From: Mytilus edulis
Lineage: Eukaryota
DNA: 64,000 nucleotides
Assembly: GCF_963676685.1 (NCBI RefSeq)
Contig: NC_092346.1
Coordinates: 3,286,001-3,350,000 of the forward strand
Direction: 5' to 3'
Shown here: positions 26,562-36,500 of the stretch, in pieces
How the letters are laid out: each line of letters begins with the position of its first letter
How positions within the stretch are numbered: position 1 is the first letter of the stretch
Made by a program: the position numbers and the translations under genes
Notes under the pieces: generated by a model
Database searches by the model: none
The model's input: the letters and a program-made list of their open reading frames with translations, nothing else
Told to the model about the DNA's origin: nothing

Positions 26562-29500
26562 ATTAAAATGGGTATATTTTTAGGCAAAAATGTTGTCACA
26601 CCCTTCTGTGTTTTTTTTTGCACTGCTCAAGATGCATTCTTATTGACTTTATATAGTTTTGAATTCACATATACATGCACCAAGATACATAAATTTCAAC
26701 AAGCCCTCACGATCCCAGATTCTGAAATGAAGACTCATGCTTAGCAAAACAATATGATTGGCGTTCGTTATAGTTTTTTCATCCGATGTTATGATTTTAA
26801 CAATCAATATGCTCTTAATGTTCAATTACCATGATACTTGTCAAAAGCATCATGATACCTATGGAGCTACCATTTGATATTTAGGGGGGGGGGGGGGGTA
26901 GTGAAGACGAAAAATTTCTTTCTTTCAAAATTTCCATATTGTCAAATTACAAGATCAAGAAGCATATATCTAGAATAAGGGAGGATTAAAGTTGAAAATA
27001 AGGGGTACAGGAACAAGCAAGCATGTGTAGCAGCAACAACAAAAATTATCAATCCTGAAAAAAAAATCCTCCTTTTCTACAGTGGCGTTTTAAATGGCCC
27101 GGCGTATACACACATCTCCTGATGAAAATAAAAATAATAATCTTATAAGCTTGAATAAAAAGAGTGGTGTATGCTCCCAAATGTCACTCACCATTTGGGG
27201 TACATGGGGCTCATAACAACGACCCCCTAAAACCAAAATGATTATAAAGTTGAGATTTATTTTGCTATTCGACTGTCAAAGCCATAGCCTTATATTAAGA
27301 CCAAAATTTCTGGCTACATGGAGACATCTAAGTCTACTATCAATATTAACAGGATATTTTGTATGACAGGAACAGAAGCGGTGACATTGTAGAAGAACAA
27401 AGTATTAACGGTATTTATGTTAAAAATGGTTTTTATTTTCAAATCAAAGGGGGCATATATATGACCTCTATGTCACCGTATTAAGAACTATTTAAAATAT
27501 CACCCTCATTCGTTTTTAATTGAGACAAAATGAATAAAGATAAAAATAAAGAATAGCAATCAGTGTCTATATATATATGTTTAAATTACTGGATGGTCAT
27601 GAAAGTGAACTGGACTGAAAGGCAAAACAATGTGACCTCCAGTCCTCTTATTTTTGACTGATTAAGCAGAGGCGGATCCATGTAACCAATTTTTTTCAGG
27701 CCCAGTCATGGATAAAAGGGGGTGGGTTCTAACCATATGTCCAATTCAAATTCATTGATCATCAAAAAGGTGATTCCAACCCCCTTCCCCCTGGATCCGC
27801 CCGGGCACTATTTAATTGCAAATACTTTGATAATTTCTGTACATTTATTTATTTATTTATTTATTGCATAGCTTTTATATAGCGCCTATCTAATAAACAT
27901 AATACTCTAAGCGCTTAACATATAAAATTGAAGGAACATATATATCACAATGCATTTGCCAACTGTCTTCACTCTTTTTATGAAAGTGAGACAATTGCCA
28001 TACTAAAAGTTTCATTAGAAATATGAATAAAAGGAAATACAAAGTATCATAATGTGGTTAATACGTAAATGAGACCGAAGCTCCCTTCCCCCCACAATAA
28101 TAAAAGAAATTACTGCAAATATTCTGGGACTATAGTCCCAGAAATTTTAGACCTTTCAGAAGACCAGCCAACGTAAACAATGAATCATCCCCCCCCCCCC
28201 CATCCCCGGTAAATATATTTACTAACTGTGATTATAAACAGAATAAATCAACATATGACCATGGAAATATCACACCCAAGTGTCCTTCTGATCCCTGCTG
28301 GTATTTCTATTCTCATTTTACTGTAAAATGAGAATAGATTTGAAAAACCAAAGGCGGATTAGGGGGAAGTGCTTACTGAACAACAAAGATATATTCTCAA
28401 ACGTATTTTATTGAATAAGACCTTTAGCGTAGACTTCAAAATTTCATAATAACTTATGAATATCTGATTCATTTATTCACACAGCCCGGTCACACAGTCA
28501 GTCAGGTTTTAACAGCATCTGTGATTTATTATAAATAGATATCTTTTTCAAATATGGTTTCAATGGTAATTAATTTGGCGATAATTTGTGAATGTCCCTT
28601 AATTTTTGGTTACTTATTCCTTTTCGAATTATTTTTTACAGTCAAAGAAAATATTGTGTTCGTCTAATACCTTTCTCTGCATGTAAAAATGTATAGGTAG
28701 AGGCTATGTTTCGCTCCCCTGTACCAATTTATCCCTTTGAAAGAAAACAGAATTCAAGTTGGGATGCTCTCTATCATGCTTCCTACATAAAACAGTGAAC
28801 ATTATTTTGTTCTGATTAGTGAGTGTATAAATATATTGTTGAAATGGTAATTAAGCCAGTTGCTTAATCATAAGGTCAGGATTGAGTAAGGCTAAGACAC
28901 TGTAAGAGGGTGAAAACTGTTGTAGTACCTGACTTATCAGAGACATGTATTTTTTAAAAGATACATATAATGTATTATACTGCTATGTGTTGTGTGTTAC
29001 AGTCTGTTGAAGTCATGATAGTACATATATTTTTAGTGTTTTGGCCATTCTTTCTTCATTGCAATATTCTAATTGCTCAATACTTTAAAATGGAGGGGGG
29101 GGGGGGGGGGTGGGGGGGTGAACAAGGGAAATAAATCAAATTTATCTAAATATGAGTATACTTTGTAATCAGTTATAGAAACTATTATTTTAAATTAACT
29201 CCCATTGCCTCAGCAGTTACATCTAACCTTAAGTGGAAATGATTCCTTTCAAACAAAAAGATATGGTAAGATGATATTTTCATACTTGTACAAAAAAAAA
29301 TAATGTATGAAACCATTGTTTATTACATCTGCTTGCATAATAATATTGAAGTTGAAACTAACAACGATCACGTGTATCCTGTCAACCCCTGAAAAACATA
29401 ATATTGTCTTCTTGACTACTTCCGCAAACCGTGATTTGATAAAATGATATATTGTTATAGTGTATGTTAATCAAAGACATACATTGTAAATACATGAATG

Positions 29501-30421
29501 TTTCACCTTTTCACATTGATTTTTTTTTATTCATTTAAAAATAAGGAGATGTGGTATGATTGCCAATAAGATTACTTCTGAGTTCAACAGAAAATTTGCA
29601 CATGCATTTTTGAAATTCTAGATTCACATGCATGACTACATTTAATGTGTAAATTTTAAGTTTAATAATACCAGAGACATGTATACATACAATATAGCTT
29701 ATTAAAGGAGGAAAATGTGCTTTATCATTTTATCAGCTTAAAGAGGCTTAGCATGAACAGATAATTTTAACCATTATGCAAATATTCATGTTTTCATATT
29801 TATATGCTGTAACAGTTCTAATTTTTTTGTCAGCTTGTACACTATTTATAAATATACTCTCTAGAAAATAAAAAGCGATGGAAAATAAATTGTGAAAAAC
29901 ATGTTCAATTTGATGTAAAATTCTCTTGAAGTTATAAAATGAGTTTTTTAATATGAGAAAAAAAAGGCTGCGTAACACAAAAATATATAATGAAAACGCA
30001 CGTAAAGCACACGTAAAACATATGTTTTACGTATATATATATGTTTTACGTGCGTTTTTAAAACATACGTTTTACGTACGTGATGTATTACGCCCGTTTC
30101 AAAACGGGCGTAAAACACCCGTTTTGGTACAGGCGTTTAACGCATGTTGGCTAAAACATGCGTTTTCCATACGTAAAACGTACGTTTTACAGACGTTTTT
30201 TTAAAACGTACGTAAAACATGCGTTGCACTTTTTGCTGTGTACAAAAGAAAACTTATAACTTGATTTGCTTCAGACATGTGTATTAAGAATACTTTAACT
30301 GGCATCTAATTTCATGTCACTGTCCAGTTTAAAAAAATATACTTGATAATTATTTATTGTCGGTATGACACCGTTTCTTATCAACCTTTGTTAAATTTTA
30401 TATCTATAAAATAATTCTTAC

Positions 30422-30505
30422 ATATTTAGTTGACTCGGTAGATAGTTTCAAATCCATACGACCAGCATGTCGTCGTCTCTGATAATGCCTGTAGCCAAGC
30501 CTTAC
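30422..30505 (-). CDS. aGPCR exon, helix 8/C-tail (VRLGYRHYQRRRHAGRMDLKLSTESTKY)
   Basis: 84 nt, phase 0; acceptor ttacgcag, followed by a gtaaga donor. Without splicing it reads through to a TAG five codons later. Confidence 0.85.
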
Positions 30506-33500
30506 CTGCGTAATTGATAAATATTTACATATGTTCAAAATAAATAGAAAACAGAAGAAAATACATTTAGTATTTGAAAATATTAGTGATTTTAATGATG
30601 CCTTGTGGTTATATTAGCTATTGTTATTTACTATGTTATTTGGTAACTTTAGAATTTTTTAATTTGCAATCATACTTCATTTTACATTTTCTTTCTAGGA
30701 CGAGTGTCAAATGTGGATCAAACTATTCAAACATCCCAGCTGCACTTGATATTACTCCAGTATTTTCCTTGTACTGCCCAACCTGTTATTGTGTTTAATA
30801 ACCTATATCGCAGATAAATAAACTTCTTACCATCATAATGTTTCAATAACAACAATCTTGTCACATGATTTGTTTTTGTCTATCGATTTATGAGTTATGA
30901 ACATCGGTATACTACTGTTGCCTTTATTCATTATTGATTTTGCCTTTGCAGATTTGTTGATTGGAGCATCACTTATGAGTGTTGTATACGAAATTTCGCA
31001 TGTACTGCAAATCTTAATCCAGATGCACTCTGAATTACACTGCACTTTTGTTTAGTATGTGTTGCTCAGTCTGTTACTAATCTTTTATCTGATAAAGTAA
31101 TGACTTTAAGTGTCCGATTTAAACTACAGACACGCCGACTACTAGACGTATGCTACCAGGATTGGATGGGGGTAAGAATACGGTGGTTGGGAGGATATCC
31201 ACAGTGGCGTTAAACCAGTGGTTGTGAGCAAACTCATCAAAGATGTAGGGATTCAACTTGGGAACACAATAACTAACAGAAACTGTAAAAAAGATGCATA
31301 TCCATGTCAGGCATTTTCCGACAAATATGTAGGGTTTATCCTAGTTAGCTAGCTGTGACGGAATTGTCCCCCTTAGAACATGATGTAGATACTTAGTCAG
31401 CCATGAGTAGTTGAGCTAAGGAAGTACTTCTTAAGATCAGTCGATAAATGCGCTTGCCTTGTAACACAGAGTTCTCGCGAGTAGAGACATGCGACTTTGC
31501 AAAAATAATCATGCTCTCCGGTTACATTGGCGCCCAACTAAAAAAATATGGAGGTTAGAGGGGGAATCTTGCAAGTGTACTTTTGTGTGAGAGTCATAAT
31601 TGGTATAATGACTATTGAGGTGGGGGAAGTGTGACGGGATTGCTTCCCTTAAAACATGTGGTAGTTAAGTAGTTAGCCGTAAGCGGGTGAGCTAGGGAAG
31701 TACTTCTTTAGCTCAGTCGGTTTAAGCGCTGGCTTGTAATACAGAGGTCCCGGGTACCAGTCCCAGTGGAGACATACGATTTTGCAAGTAGAATCATGCT
31801 CTCCAGTTACATAGCGAAAAATAACTGGTATTTCGTTCATTGATTATTTTCTTATTGCGTGTGGTGAAAGTTGGACTGTATTTGTTTGTGGGTATTGGAT
31901 TGATAATAGCTCGTGTAAATGTTTGCTTTTCCTTCGTTTCGTTGTATTCTGTCAAAATGATACATACCTGCTCATTCAAGAAACAGTGGAACAGGCATAT
32001 GAAAAGACCCTGTTTAAAGATACATATATATCAACCAATACAAATAGATTAAACACTAACAATTGAAAAAAAAAAATAATTAGTAATAACATGTTCCGAG
32101 ATCGCTGACATTGTCTTCTTTATTGACTTATTGCGTATTAAATATACAAATATTAGCATTAAGTATGCTAGACGAGCATTTTCTCAAAATCAGATTTATT
32201 TATTGCAATCGAACCGAAGGAGCTGGGAAGTCAAATTTAAAAATACGCAGCTCGAAACTTTTGATTACATAGTCTTAAAAATAGCCGTGAAAATTGAATC
32301 ATGTCATAATTACTTCAAACTTTAAGTTGGTTGAGTATGATATAATTGCAAGTTACAAAGAAACACATTATTACCGGTTTAACCATTTTCGTGATGTCCA
32401 ATGCAATATCTTTTAAAAAAAATTGTTTAAAGAGTTATTTTTAATCAGACACATATCTCTGTTAACAATAGTTAATAGACATTGATCATTCAACCTGTCT
32501 GAGACATTGTTGTTATAAAGTTTTGAATAATGTTTTATAAAATCAAGAAGTATCAATACGAGATTGCTTGCAAGGTAGATTTCCATAGCATTAATTTTAT
32601 TAAAAGGCATTTTTTTTTAATTTTAAAAGAGTTTATTTGTACTGATGATCGACATTTTACAAAACATTGCTTATATAAAAATCTTACATATATAAGTTTG
32701 AAAAACAGAGCACTTAAAATGCAGTTTTTCATATGCCTGATATTCTTAAAAAGGATGAAAGACACTGATTTTATACAAATATCCGGAGCTTATATTTATC
32801 TTTGCTAAAACTCTGACAAGAACGATGCATGTATTACAAAGCAATTTTCAATATAGTGTTTTGTTTACAAAGGCATCACTCTTACAAAAAAGACTACCTA
32901 ATGTGAACCATTTCTCTCTGGCAACTTCGCAGTAACGCTTTTATATCGAGTGTTTATCTTCGATTTGAGACGATTTTATCGAGCATTCGTTTTGTAATAT
33001 CGTTTCCTGCACAGATAGTTGCTATTTTTAGTGAAACTAGATCAATTTCACAATGTTGCTTAGCCGTTAGTTTTTCTTTGCTTTTGTGCCAAATGATTTT
33101 CTTTTGGTATTTTTTTGCTTGTATTTCTTTTGTGTTGCTATTCTGTCTTCAACCTATGCTTATTCATATTTCTGTGGTGATTTCAATCTATTTGGTACAC
33201 TAAATTATCGAAATCAAAAGCTTCCTGTTAAATTTTGTTATGCTTTAATATCCGATTGCCATGTGATTATGAACTTTCCGATTGGATTTTCTCTGAGTTC
33301 TGTATGTTTGTGATTTTACTTTTTACAATTTTTTTTTCAGATGCTTGCATTTAGTTTTGATAACTTCGTAAATGATTTTGTCTAGGGGATAAATAAATTT
33401 GATATAGTGTACCTGGAGAGAATTGCAAATTGCAAAAAGGTATTGGAACATGACCAAATCATCGTTCAAAGAAAATGCTCCCAGCACCCAAGTTACACCA

Positions 33501-36500
33501 AACAACGGCAAAATGACACAAATACTTTTTAAACCAGTCCTATCAAAAGACAAGATGCATGTATTATTACAAATACATATAAAGTATATATTTCTCAGGT
33601 AAGACGATAAGCTGGAGCGTGTATTGCTTACCTGGTATGTACGTCCATGAACAGCACGGTATGTGTCTCCTGTTGAAAAAAGCAATCCAAAGAATATGCA
33701 TTTATTCCGTTTTCGCTAGGGTTCGTGTTTTCCAGGTTGTAGTGTCCTACGTATTATTTTTTAATTCGTCCGTTTGTCGTTGTATATCACTTTTTATCAT
33801 GACACTACATTTTAAAGTTTTGGGTTTAAATGTCCCGGAGGCTTTATTCTTTCTCTTTTGGAATCAATTAAGTTTTAAAAAGACACCAGTAGACGAAATA
33901 CATATATGTATAAAGCACAAAGTTCTGAACTACGATAAACTAGACTCTTTTAAAATTTCGAGCCAATCGAGGTAGAAATAACAACAGTTAACTTTATTCG
34001 TGTTTTTAAAAAAAATCTTGCATTTAAATATGTGCTTTTGCATGTTTATTCAGAGCGATAACGGTAAAGCCAAGTGACTGTGATAACATGCTGTATCCTT
34101 ACGTGCAGTGCAGACCAAGTAATGTTTGAGATGCAACGTATTGTCTTTTAAGTTTTCAAAGACAGTTAATGCAATTACTGCGTGCATTTATTATTGGGAT
34201 TCTAAAATGACAGAGGAAAAGTTTCATACTACTTTGGGTGTTAGAGAATAATCATTTAAGTATTTTCTAATTTAACAGTTTCATGTTCTCTTTTTTGGAC
34301 GATAACTTTTTGTCATTAAAAACCGTTTTACTATTTGCTTTTAAATGTTGATGACTACTGGCATATGCCAAAAACGCATTAAATTGGTTGTTTTCTTCCT
34401 TCGTAAGCAATATTCAGATGCGATCTATGTTTGAGTAGTAATAAGACATTCACATGTAATCAGTTTCAATACATCGAAGTCTTTTCATCAATATGATAAT
34501 TACAACATAAAGGTACAAATAATATATGTTGACAAAATGATTACCAATAACACACTTACTTATATTTCGTTTGAAGTGTTTTAGCAGCTAACCCTGTACT
34601 GGTCAATATTTTATACACCGTAATGATGATAATAATTAGATTAATCTGGAATAGACAATGTGAAAATATACATAGTTAATTAAAAATCCATTACGAATAA
34701 AAATAAAATACCTTCTGATGCTAATTTGACTTTTTGTTCGATTTTAATGTTGTTTTGCTCATCTCTATACCTCATTTTCATTGCCCCCTAGGCATCCGCC
34801 TACTTTTAACAATTTTTTATAGAAACATGTTTTGTTTTCAATTTGAGTTATTGCAGACGATAGAGTTGTAACTCCAAATAATAATAGCTTAGAGTGAATG
34901 AATAAATTATTGCAAAAGGGAAGCTCGGTAACTGAATACATTTACGTCTTACGTAAAAACAAAGTGTTTTCATATTTTTTTCATGGTGTAATTGCAAACA
35001 AGTTTTAAGCATTTCAATTCTTAAGCATATGAAATTATCAAATGCTGCGTTTATGGCTACGTTTATTATTTTTTCTTGCATAAAAGCCTAATATATCAAC
35101 ATTTATGACACATTTAAATGTACAAAAGCAGGAAAAATATCAATACAAAGCTATTGTTACTGCAGACATACAGCACACCGAAAAATAAAAAAAATATCGG
35201 TCTGTTCAAGCATTTTTGTGGAATTAAATGATCAAATTATATATTGATTCTTTTCATTTACTCTGGACAAAAGTTTTCGACAGTAAACATCATCCGCTGA
35301 TTTACATTTGAAAAATATCATTGTAACCCTGCTGAACAATAGTTTTTAAAATTTCTACCAGAAAATAGAAAATACTCAACCTTTTGAATGCTTCAATCTA
35401 TATGTTCTTCCCTTAGTATCTTTTAGTGCATTTATGTTTGTTTTGTATTACTATCTTTACATTATTTTTGTTCTTCTTTCATTTATTAGGAGAGATCTTA
35501 ATAATGTTATATATTGTATACAAACGAACTGTTGAACCAAAAAATAATAACGGATATTAAAGGTTAAAACTAGAATCAAAGAAAAAATGACAATTACACA
35601 TTTAATAATTGATCATAATATTCTTTGATTTGTTTTCTTATTGTCATGAAATACATACCAAACTAACAAGTAGTGCTGGTCCAATGAATGCCCAGATGAG
35701 ATTTGACTCAAGGGTTAACCAACAACTGAAACAATTTAAGCAATCATCTTGATAGTTATCATATATATATATATTACGTTTTTCTTCTGATTTGTAAATG
35801 TCCAGAACATGCACACTACAAATACATCAAGAATGCCCATCTAGCATTTGTTTGTTCAGTGCGATTTGCATTCACATTGTAAAAGAGGGACAGAAAATAC
35901 CAAAAGGGACAGTCAAATTGTTACACATTTGTTTTTCGTTCTTTTTTTTTACATAAATAAGGCCGTTAGTTTTCTCGTTTGAATTATTTGACATTGTCTT
36001 ATCGAAGCCTTTTATAGCTGACTATGCGATATGGGCTTTGCTCATTGTTGAAGGCTGTACGGTGACCTATAGTTGATAATGTCTGTGTTATTCTTGTCTT
36101 TTGTGGATAGTTGTCACATTGGCAATCATACCACATCTTCTTTTTTATAAACTCATATTATATAGAAAATAAAACAATGACAACGTCATGTCTTAAAATA
36201 AATAGGCAACCAGACAAATAATAGCACAGAAGACAGAACATAGAAAACTAAAGACGTGGCAACACGAAACCCACCAAAACCTGGGGATGATGTCAGGTGC
36301 TTCGGAAGAGTAAGCATATCATGCTCCACATGTGGCATCCATCGCATATCATTAGTCAGGGACTTAGTAGTTGTTGTGTGACTGACACAAATTCTAAACT
36401 AATTCACAGTCGATTAGATTAATAAGTCAAAGATTAAGGTACAGGTACAAGTCAGATAAAAAACAATATTAATTGATCATGTTCCAAATGGTTAAAGCAT

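Follow-up and report, generated by a model that had tools for sequence, protein, structure and literature searches.

A probable fossil insertion of Helenus-1, a tRNA-bearing TRIM family of Mytilus, in the genome of Mytilus edulis

Helenus elements are tRNA-bearing TRIMs of 311-1263 bp, in which two short LTRs enclose a short non-coding interior (PMC10886601). In Mytilus, three such entries have been named and described, namely Helenus-1_MyCo, Helenus-1_MyGa and Helenus-1B_MyGa, from Mytilus coruscus and M. galloprovincialis (Kojima, 2024, Biology 13:119; PMC10886601), and the Helenus-1 consensus is deposited in Repbase according to the same paper (PMC10886601). For Helenus-1_MyCo, an LTR of 182, an interior of 102, a total of 466 and a duplication of 4 are given (Table S1 of PMC10886601). 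A Gypsy partner for these elements has been argued from the resemblance of their primer sites to those of oyster Gypsy families, together with the 4-bp duplication (PMC10886601). Herein, an old insertion in a mussel chromosome is compared with these published entries, and the copies of its family in the genome are described.

Architecture and family identity of the insertion

The window, meaning the whole 64,000-nucleotide stretch of DNA that was analysed, carries at 31354-31811 a 458-bp unit on the + strand, which reads TAGC, a 173-bp LTR, T plus a tRNA-Lys primer site, an interior, a 182-bp LTR and TAGC. The initial annotation had described a complete two-LTR TRIM that has a primer-binding site (PBS), a polypurine tract (PPT) and 4-bp target-site duplications, and every one of these parts was found in its place. 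The 5' LTR (31354..31526, + strand, 173 bp, TGTGAC...GGTTACA) and the 3' LTR (31630..31811, + strand, 182 bp), the latter being the better preserved of the pair, were delimited by alignment to each other and by BLAST of parts. The left copy of the target-site duplication, TAGC at 31350..31353 (+), repeats the four bases found 3' of the 3' LTR, where the right copy lies at 31812..31815 (+), 3' of the element that the left copy precedes.

Between the LTRs lies a non-coding interior of 103 bp (31527..31629, +), which by eye is colinear with the 102-bp interior of Helenus-1_MyCo. It opens with a T at 31527, followed by the primer-binding site TGGCGCCCAAC at 31528..31538 (+), the complement of the last 11 nt of tRNA-Lys(CUU) including CCA; the assignment to this tRNA had been made from the outset and was confirmed over these 11 nt. 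The site matches once only in the 64-kb window, and shuffled sequences gave a mean of 0.24 matches with one mismatch allowed. The primer site of Helenus-1_MyCo, shown with other Helenus primer sites and the tRNA-Lys-CTT 3' end, is likewise TGGCGCCCAAC (Fig. S2C of PMC10886601). At its other end, the interior contains a hairpin (31592..31613, +) with the arms AGTCAT (31592-31597) and ATGACT (31608-31613), just 5' of the polypurine tract GAGGTGGGGGAAG (31617..31629, +), which adjoins the 3' LTR. The element contains no ORF that reaches 70 aa.

The two LTRs of the window copy can be aligned end to end, with an identity of 74.9% over 183 columns. The 5' LTR is decayed: its T-arm lacks 10 bp, the palindrome described below is broken and a run of three T residues stands where other copies have four. 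This agrees with the earlier description of a tRNA-like cassette in each LTR, with the T-arm lost from the 5' one. The window copy is dead: its 5' LTR lacks part of the B box and of the hairpin, and about a fifth of the bases differ between its two LTRs.

Altogether, the unit is very probably a fossil Helenus-1 insertion, Helenus-1 being the tRNA-bearing TRIM family that Kojima (2024) described from Mytilus. Comparisons with the published Helenus consensus sequences were made by eye against DataS1, and dimensions were taken from Table S1. By eye, the window 3' LTR differs from the Helenus-1_MyCo LTR at 24 of 182 positions without a gap (about 87% identity), and the LTR of a young copy from this genome (L004) equals that of Helenus-1_MyGa save for a few bases at positions 22-31. 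The Mytilus Helenus-1 entries and the window family share the LTR length (182-183), the 4-bp duplication, the TGTGAC...GGTTACA ends, the tRNA-Lys primer site, the interior hairpin with its purine tract, and the Thr(UGU)-like cassette. Published Mytilus Helenus-1 interiors measure 102, 120 or 125, and both length classes occur in the present genome, at about 103 nt in 14 junction pairs and about 120 nt in 17. As a matter of subfamily detail, young copies in this genome have, by eye, an LTR of MyGa type together with an interior of MyCo type. The window copy shows no difference of kind from published Helenus-1; it is just old, with the 10-bp loss in its 5' LTR. The Helenus type named in the initial annotation was borne out by dimensions and, by eye, by sequence matching Helenus-1_MyCo and Helenus-1_MyGa, whereas its suggestion that the family might be uncharacterised falls, since a consensus has already been published (PMC10886601, DataS1 and Table S1). 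Class and family are both already known, from the literature and, per PMC10886601, from Repbase.

The tRNA-like cassette, its hairpin and the proposed transcription

In the 3' LTR, a tRNA-Thr(UGU)-like cassette (31702..31774, +) aligns end to end with the Rfam tRNA model, at 17.6 bits and an E value of about 1. In Helenus, the LTR is expected to contain tRNA-derived sequence with an A box TRGCY...YGG and a B box GGTTC, and the present family agrees with this. The cassette consists of an A box (31709-31720), an anticodon loop CTTGTAA (31733-31739) and a B box (31753-31763), all on the + strand; of the two B boxes of the window copy, that of the 3' LTR is degenerate and that of the 5' LTR partly deleted. 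Young copies, in which GGTTCGAGTCC is intact, score 26.7 bits against a gathering score of 29. A run of four T residues (T4; 31780..31783, +), 6 nt 3' of the cassette, is a candidate Pol III terminator and a putative end of R, and 52 of 58 LTRs of the family have T4 at the equivalent position. When 10 young LTRs were compared, the A box, anticodon loop, B box and T4 were invariant and 20 other positions were variable.

A second structure overlaps the start of this cassette. A 28-nt palindrome (31688..31715, +), detected by repeat search and RNA folding, is centred on tRNA position +1, and its upstream arm is complementary to tRNA positions 1-14, the start of the A box included. The RNA fold of 31675-31728 reached -24.4 kcal/mol (z -4.28), with none of 200 shuffles as good, and the same hairpin in the window 5' LTR gave a fold z of +0.26. 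By eye, a +1 hairpin of 16-28 bp recurs across many bivalve Helenus families and in coelacanth LTR1_LCh, and it covaries, with both members of its central pairs altered from one Helenus family to another. The G-U pairs of the hairpin work on the sense strand only. LTR copies of the family itself are too alike for within-family covariation, and a metagenome scan with a hairpin plus A-box pattern returned five chance matches (bacterial-type tRNA and coding sequence) and no bivalve element. The hairpin is absent from the text of Kojima (2024; PMC10886601). The interior hairpin, for its part, occurs in young copies in an intact and longer form (in L004 the stem has 9 bp and the whole interior folds at z -2.5; the window copy gives z -1.83), and by eye it is kept across the Mytilidae Helenus-1 and Helenus-3 consensus sequences.

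Judged on these features, transcription of Helenus-1 by Pol III, driven by the A and B boxes of the cassette, is slightly favoured. In the proposed life cycle, the internal A and B boxes would set the start of the family RNA at the 5' LTR's tRNA-like cassette. The RNA would pass the weak T4 stop behind the cassette and continue through U5 and the primer site, then through the interior and U3. It would end at the same T4 in the 3' LTR, leaving a roughly 80-nt tRNA-like segment as R; tRNA-Lys would prime reverse transcription, and the cDNA would be made and integrated by enzymes of a Gypsy-type element. Sequencing runs were examined as assembled contigs, which carry no transcript start, end or strand, and some of their RNA labels were guessed. 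Self-closing contigs that contain only the element (LTR plus interior, 285 nt with a 30-nt overlap) were found in one recorded RNA library and in one run guessed to be RNA, in which DNA carry-over is possible. No published test of Helenus Pol III transcription was found in the literature searched.

The main competing account, which we regard as rather unlikely, keeps the family and changes the polymerase: Helenus-1 would be transcribed by Pol II from U3, as an ordinary TRIM, and the cassette would be a structure for packaging, stability or strand transfer, or a tolerated SINE relic. The cloverleaf is indeed decayed, since the acceptor stem of the young-copy cassette has standard pairs at only 3 of 7 positions and the tRNA score stays below the gathering threshold, and the structure that is maintained, in part as judged by eye across families, is the 5' end of the tRNA paired with the upstream LTR. 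Furthermore, a T4 about 80 nt past the presumed start would halt Pol III inside the 5' LTR in most transcripts unless it were leaky, and the Helenus promoter was called unvalidated by Kojima (2024; PMC10886601). Against Pol II transcription, the A and B boxes are tRNA-like in sequence and spacing as well as invariant in young copies, their conservation extends over Helenus families from several phyla (Kojima, 2024; PMC10886601), and Cassandra provides a precedent with its reported transcription from a 5S promoter.

That the cassettes are working tRNA-Thr genes, with the family serving to enlarge the tRNA gene set, is highly improbable. The anticodon loop CTTGTAA does correspond to UGU (Thr), and seven bivalve Helenus families could be scored as tRNA-Thr by tRNAscan-SE (PMC10886601). 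However, ARAGORN called no tRNA, either across the window or among 30 family loci, and the Rfam tRNA model gave no match at its gathering threshold in 20 family loci; from these empty searches, the LTR cassettes are concluded to be tRNA-like and not tRNA genes. The Rfam alignment also places several non-pairs in the acceptor and anticodon stems, and a functional tRNA was judged unlikely by Kojima (PMC10886601).

In this family and, by eye, in many bivalve Helenus families and coelacanth LTR1_LCh, the acceptor stem of the cassette is not preserved, and the selected structure may be the +1 hairpin in its place; possible roles include hiding the 3' copy from tRNA-processing enzymes or helping strand transfer.

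Genome copies, age and mobility

In the 1.37-Gb genome, 327 family LTR cores were counted (control 0), along with 143 PPT-LTR junctions under a relaxed pattern (control 1) and 54 exact LTR-PBS junctions. The 23-mer spanning the PPT and LTR junction occurs exactly 50 times, and its reversed-pattern control not at all. Because hundreds of genome copies share the same architecture, the window unit is not a chance repeat. Copies are scattered over at least 14 large contigs, and among 19 complete ones the 4-bp duplication is perfect in 15, retains three of four bases in three and two of four in one. Arrays of LTR plus interior in tandem were found at L008, L014 and C2:13599370-13600001. Further copies, 4-bp duplications and tandem arrays, all of which the initial annotation had named as things to look for, are thus present. 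These arrays might suggest that the unit is a satellite repeat or the product of local tandem duplication, with only the look of LTR-interior-LTR, a reading of negligible probability that is refuted by the duplication flanking each of the dispersed copies, and the three-LTR L008 array itself, together with an exact empty site for one insertion, and that is opposed as well by the canonical tRNA primer site and purine tract at the LTR borders.

The identity of the two LTRs was measured in 24 pairs and extends from 100% (7 pairs) down to the 74.9% of the window copy, the most diverged of all, in keeping with the earlier view that this insertion is old. Helenus-1 insertions in this genome range from very old, as in the window, to very young. 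Two young copies, L004 and L009, occupy different sites and are about 100% identical. In addition, the empty L004 site, with an exact join and 4 shared letters, is present in contigs of two other organisms. With identical LTRs, near-identical copies at separate sites and an empty allele elsewhere, Helenus-1 looks currently mobile in this mussel.

A search for the presumed Gypsy helper found no autonomous element in the genome carrying the LTR-PBS or PPT-LTR junction of the family, among the junction matches listed. Within those matches, all but 5 of the 54 exact LTR-PBS junctions have a PPT-LTR partner 103-124 nt away, mismatches being allowed; of the exceptions, two have their partner at 327 and 522 nt, and for the other three none is among the matches listed. 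Likewise, none of the junction pairs listed lies kilobases apart.

The +1 hairpin and the signs of current mobility in this mussel both go beyond the published description of the family. The combined proposal, that the hairpin, lying at the presumed border of U3 and R, is an RNA element under selection and that Helenus-1 is at the same time currently mobile in this mussel, is put forward tentatively, as a possibility that falls short of an even chance. The value of these results is modest and consists in a count of Helenus-1 copies and their range of ages for a mussel genome assembled at chromosome scale, with signs of ongoing mobility, and in two features that would shape a transcription test, namely the single T4 that follows the cassette and the +1 hairpin. 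If the mobility is true, the family would offer a natural system for testing Pol III-driven LTR retrotransposition in animals.

Relation to known systems

The closest relatives outside Mytilus are the other bivalve Helenus families (Modiolus, Bathymodiolus, Limnoperna, oysters and scallops) and coelacanth LTR1_LCh, which have the same architecture and a 4-bp duplication. Many of these Helenus families also share, by eye, the tRNA-Lys primer site, the CTTTAGCTCA start of the cassette and the complementary upstream arm, but they have otherwise diverged from Helenus-1 in LTR and interior sequence. In some families, such as Helenus-5_SaGl, the tRNA-like acceptor stem is kept in full and there is no palindrome.

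Among TRIMs of other kinds, biv-TRIM is a bivalve element that likewise occurs in Mytilus galloprovincialis and in tandem and solo forms (Satovic et al., 2019; PMC6934838). It has no identifiable canonical primer site, is characterized by a conserved TGATCCCAAAGGAC segment, and a tRNA cassette does not figure in the description of its repeats (PMC6934838); on these grounds, it was rejected as the family of the window element. Cassandra, a plant TRIM, resembles Helenus in being a non-autonomous LTR element with a piece of a Pol III-type small-RNA gene in both LTRs, and it also occurs in tandem arrays (PMC7215508). It differs in its plant hosts, in carrying 5S rRNA in place of tRNA, in its 5-bp duplications and in that its Pol III transcription is reported as validated, whereas that of Helenus is not.

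Finally, tRNA-derived SINEs (SINE2) resemble Helenus in that their head derives from a tRNA, contains A and B boxes and presumably serves as a Pol III promoter. They lack the LTRs, primer site and purine tract of Helenus, depend on LINE enzymes for mobilisation and produce duplications of variable length. The two are joined in the proposal that Helenus originated from a SINE2 inserted into the LTR of a TRIM (Kojima, 2024; PMC10886601).

Architecture of the window copy

The direct repeats at 31354-31526 and 31630-31811 can be aligned end to end (sequence reading of 31100-32100 and repeat finder), and both begin with TGTGAC and end with GGTTACA. These long terminal repeats (LTRs) measure 173 bp (5') and 182 bp (3') in the window copy, the 5' LTR lacking 10 bp at the place of the T-arm of the tRNA-like cassette in the 3' LTR. 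A TAGC duplication (31350-31353 and 31812-31815) flanks the element on both sides. A single T separates the 5' LTR from the primer-binding site (PBS) TGGCGCCCAAC (31528-31538), which is unique within the 64-kb window and complementary to the 3'-terminal 11 nt, CCA included, of tRNA-Lys(CUU), whose 3' end is given in Fig. S2C of Kojima (Kojima, 2024; PMC10886601). At the 3' end of the 103-bp interior, the purine tract (PPT) GAGGTGGGGGAAG abuts the 3' LTR and is immediately preceded by an AGTCAT/ATGACT hairpin. The copy is without coding capacity; its LTR ends, tRNA-Lys primer site, purine tract and 4-bp duplication constitute the cis-acting set of an LTR retrotransposon. The surroundings (29000-34000) are AT-rich, with a GC content of 0.24-0.37 compared to 0.41-0.44 in the element, and contain no ORF longer than 120 aa, which indicates that the element is intergenic or intronic. 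The structural description in the initial annotation, LTR lengths included, proved accurate upon sequence reading, repeat finding and LTR alignment, and the element had rightly been read as a TRIM with tRNA-bearing LTRs.

The Rfam tRNA model spans the cassette at 31702-31774 in full length, with a score of only 17.6 bits, while ARAGORN returned zero tRNA calls on the window. The 3' acceptor strand of the cassette is not complementary to its 5' strand, and it is very unlikely that the cassettes are working tRNA genes.

Copies, mobility and age of the family

The window's own genome (1.37 Gb) was searched with the element as query; of approximately 500 first-look candidates, dozens matched over the full length with identities of 74-85%, and copies lie on at least 14 contigs. 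BLAST of element parts recovered the LTR-interior-LTR order in nearly all of 30 fetched loci. Perfect 4-bp duplications, each different, flank 15 of the 19 copies with both ends intact; in the others, three of four bases match (three copies) or two of four (one copy). Genome-wide pattern matching with zero mismatches found 54 LTR-PBS junctions (control 0) and 50 PPT-LTR junctions (control 0); with up to three mismatches, 143 PPT-LTR junctions (control 1) and 327 LTR cores (control 0) were obtained. Paired junctions fall into spacing classes of ~103 nt (14 pairs), 114-117 nt (4) and ~120 nt (17).

Tandem arrays of the type LTR-interior-LTR-interior-LTR, repeating every 285 or ~302 bp, were also detected, at L008:1216-1967 (a three-LTR form bounded by its own 4-bp duplication, GGTG), L014:1037-1970 (a longer array), and, on contigs C2 and C9 of the same genome, C2:13599370-13600001 and C9:21590937-21591458. 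Two-LTR copies, tandem arrays and 4-bp target duplications, which the initial annotation had proposed to look for, were thereby all found.

LTR-pair identity (n = 24) ranges from 100% in seven pairs down to 74.9% in the window copy, whose LTRs differ at ~0.21 per site without the 10-bp gap (~0.24 after Jukes-Cantor correction). If neutral substitutions are assumed to accrue at 1e-9 to 1e-8 per site per year, this suggests an insertion age of 10-100 million years. With the young copy L004 as query, copies at other sites were 97-100% identical. Furthermore, when public contigs were compared with L004 and its flanks, runs of two other organisms contained the empty site (L004:1496-1968), in which the two flanks meet with exactly 471 bases left out, corresponding to the element plus one duplication, and with 4 letters shared. 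The L004 insertion is therefore lineage-specific or polymorphic. Altogether, the family has inserted repeatedly over a long period. A separate locus, L009:1501-1967, is ~100% identical to L004 and has an LTR pair of 99.5% identity with discordant flanks (TCTG versus GTTG); it may be a recombination product of two insertions.

Palindrome at tRNA +1 and candidate Pol III signals

The repeat finder located in each LTR a 28-nt palindrome centred on tRNA position +1 (31688-31715 in the 3' LTR; a remnant at 31412-31439 in the 5' LTR). In RNA folding, LTR 45-102 of L004 (L004:1545-1602) forms a 58-nt hairpin (-29.9 kcal/mol, z -5.66), which is kept in the window 3' LTR (z -4.28) and lost from the 5' LTR (z +0.26). 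In the downstream arm lie at least the first 14 tRNA positions, which take in the beginning of the A box; the upstream arm is LTR sequence. By eye, the same arrangement was recognized in the DataS1 consensus sequences of Helenus-1, -2 and -3_MyGa, MoPh, BaPl, LimFor, SaGl-6, PiNo-1, ArIr-2 and -4, MiYe-1 and coelacanth LTR1_LCh, and was absent from families whose tRNA-like acceptor stem is complete. Its central pairs, also compared by eye, vary on both sides between families: from the centre outward they are T-A and G-C in Helenus-1 and C-G and T-A in Helenus-3, the first is A-T in Helenus-2, and three double changes occur in an oyster family. Read on the opposite strand, several G-U pairs would no longer pair. 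Within the family, copies are too alike for a covariation test, and a metagenome scan for further hairpin families gave chance matches only. The text of PMC10886601 mentions neither palindrome, hairpin nor Helenus terminator.

Young copies have canonical A (LTR 80-91) and B (LTR 124-134) boxes spaced by 32 nt, both invariant in ten young LTRs in which 20 other positions vary. Six nucleotides 3' of the cassette lies the sole T4 run of the LTR-plus-interior unit (31780-31783 in the window; LTR 151-154 in L004). Its scarcity elsewhere in the 285-nt unit is statistically unremarkable, about 1.5 runs being expected by rough estimate. This run is kept in 52 of 58 family LTRs; the 5' LTR of the window copy has only T3 at that place. 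Judged from sequence, the run qualifies as a candidate stop for Pol III and would delimit R. Pol III would start at tRNA +1 (LTR 73), giving an R from LTR 73 to ~154, a U5 of the last 28 nt and a U3 of the first 72 nt, with a T4 that would have to be leaky in the 5' LTR but end transcripts in the 3' LTR. Such read-through can be likened to retroviruses, in which the 5' poly(A) signal is ignored.

In a recorded RNA library (fish-gut metatranscriptome), one 315-nt contig consists of LTR plus interior (285 nt) and a 30-nt overlap, a closed cycle without flanks; being assembled, it does not reveal ends or strand. A near-identical 311-nt contig occurs in a run guessed to be RNA. These closed-cycle contigs are weakly suggestive of an R-U5-interior-U3-R transcript, and carry-over of multicopy DNA would fit equally well. 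On balance we lean slightly towards Pol III as the driver of the family; Pol II transcription, with the cassette in a different role, seems less likely. Four runs containing the mussel element (X9, X10, X17 and X18) are fish-gut metatranscriptomes, presumably reflecting mussels eaten by the fish. In another run (X2), a contig at L004:1701 shows 20 A's right after the A-run behind the primer site, which could reflect polyadenylation, internal priming or a variant copy.

Proposed helper element and family identity

Following the Helenus literature, mobilisation would occur in trans by a Gypsy-type element, for which Kojima cited the 4-bp duplication and primer sites resembling those of oyster Gypsy families (PMC10886601). 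Nearly all LTR-PBS junctions that could be paired have a PPT-LTR junction at 103-124 nt; three were left unpaired. Two longer-spaced copies, C3:84087494-84087821 (327 nt) and C9:72279704-72280226 (522 nt), may have a longer interior or represent nested insertions. Among the paired junctions of the genome-wide pattern matches, none lie kilobases apart, and no autonomous element with these exact junctions was found among them. This fits the view of Kojima that TRIMp3 and their helpers do not have LTRs in common (PMC10886601).

Helenus was defined as TRIMs with tRNA-derived sequence in their LTRs; animal families have 4-bp duplications, and 51 families are known from pteriomorph bivalves, including Mytilus galloprovincialis (MyGa) and M. 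coruscus (MyCo), some with cassettes that read as tRNA-Thr, and with primers that include tRNA-Lys (Kojima, 2024; PMC10886601). Another candidate identity, biv-TRIM, was rejected, having no canonical primer site and differing in its conserved segments (PMC6934838). The initial annotation had suggested that the family might be uncharacterised; by its dimensions (Table S1) and its likeness to DataS1 sequences, compared by eye, the window element is a member of the already published Helenus-1 family, and its host is very probably a Mytilus of the edulis/galloprovincialis group. Table S1 gives LTR, interior and total lengths of 182, 102 and 466 with a 4-bp duplication for Helenus-1_MyCo, 183/125/491 for Helenus-1_MyGa and 182/120/484 for Helenus-1B_MyGa (PMC10886601). 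In the comparison by eye, the window 3' LTR is colinear with that of Helenus-1_MyCo without gaps, at 24 differences in 182 positions, and the interiors run in parallel from primer site through hairpin to purine tract. Also by eye, the L004 LTR equals that of Helenus-1_MyGa at every letter outside a variable patch (22-31), whose alternative variant in young copies is the 1B_MyGa form. Similarly, the ~103-nt junction spacing corresponds to the MyCo-type interior and the ~120-nt spacing to the MyGa-type.
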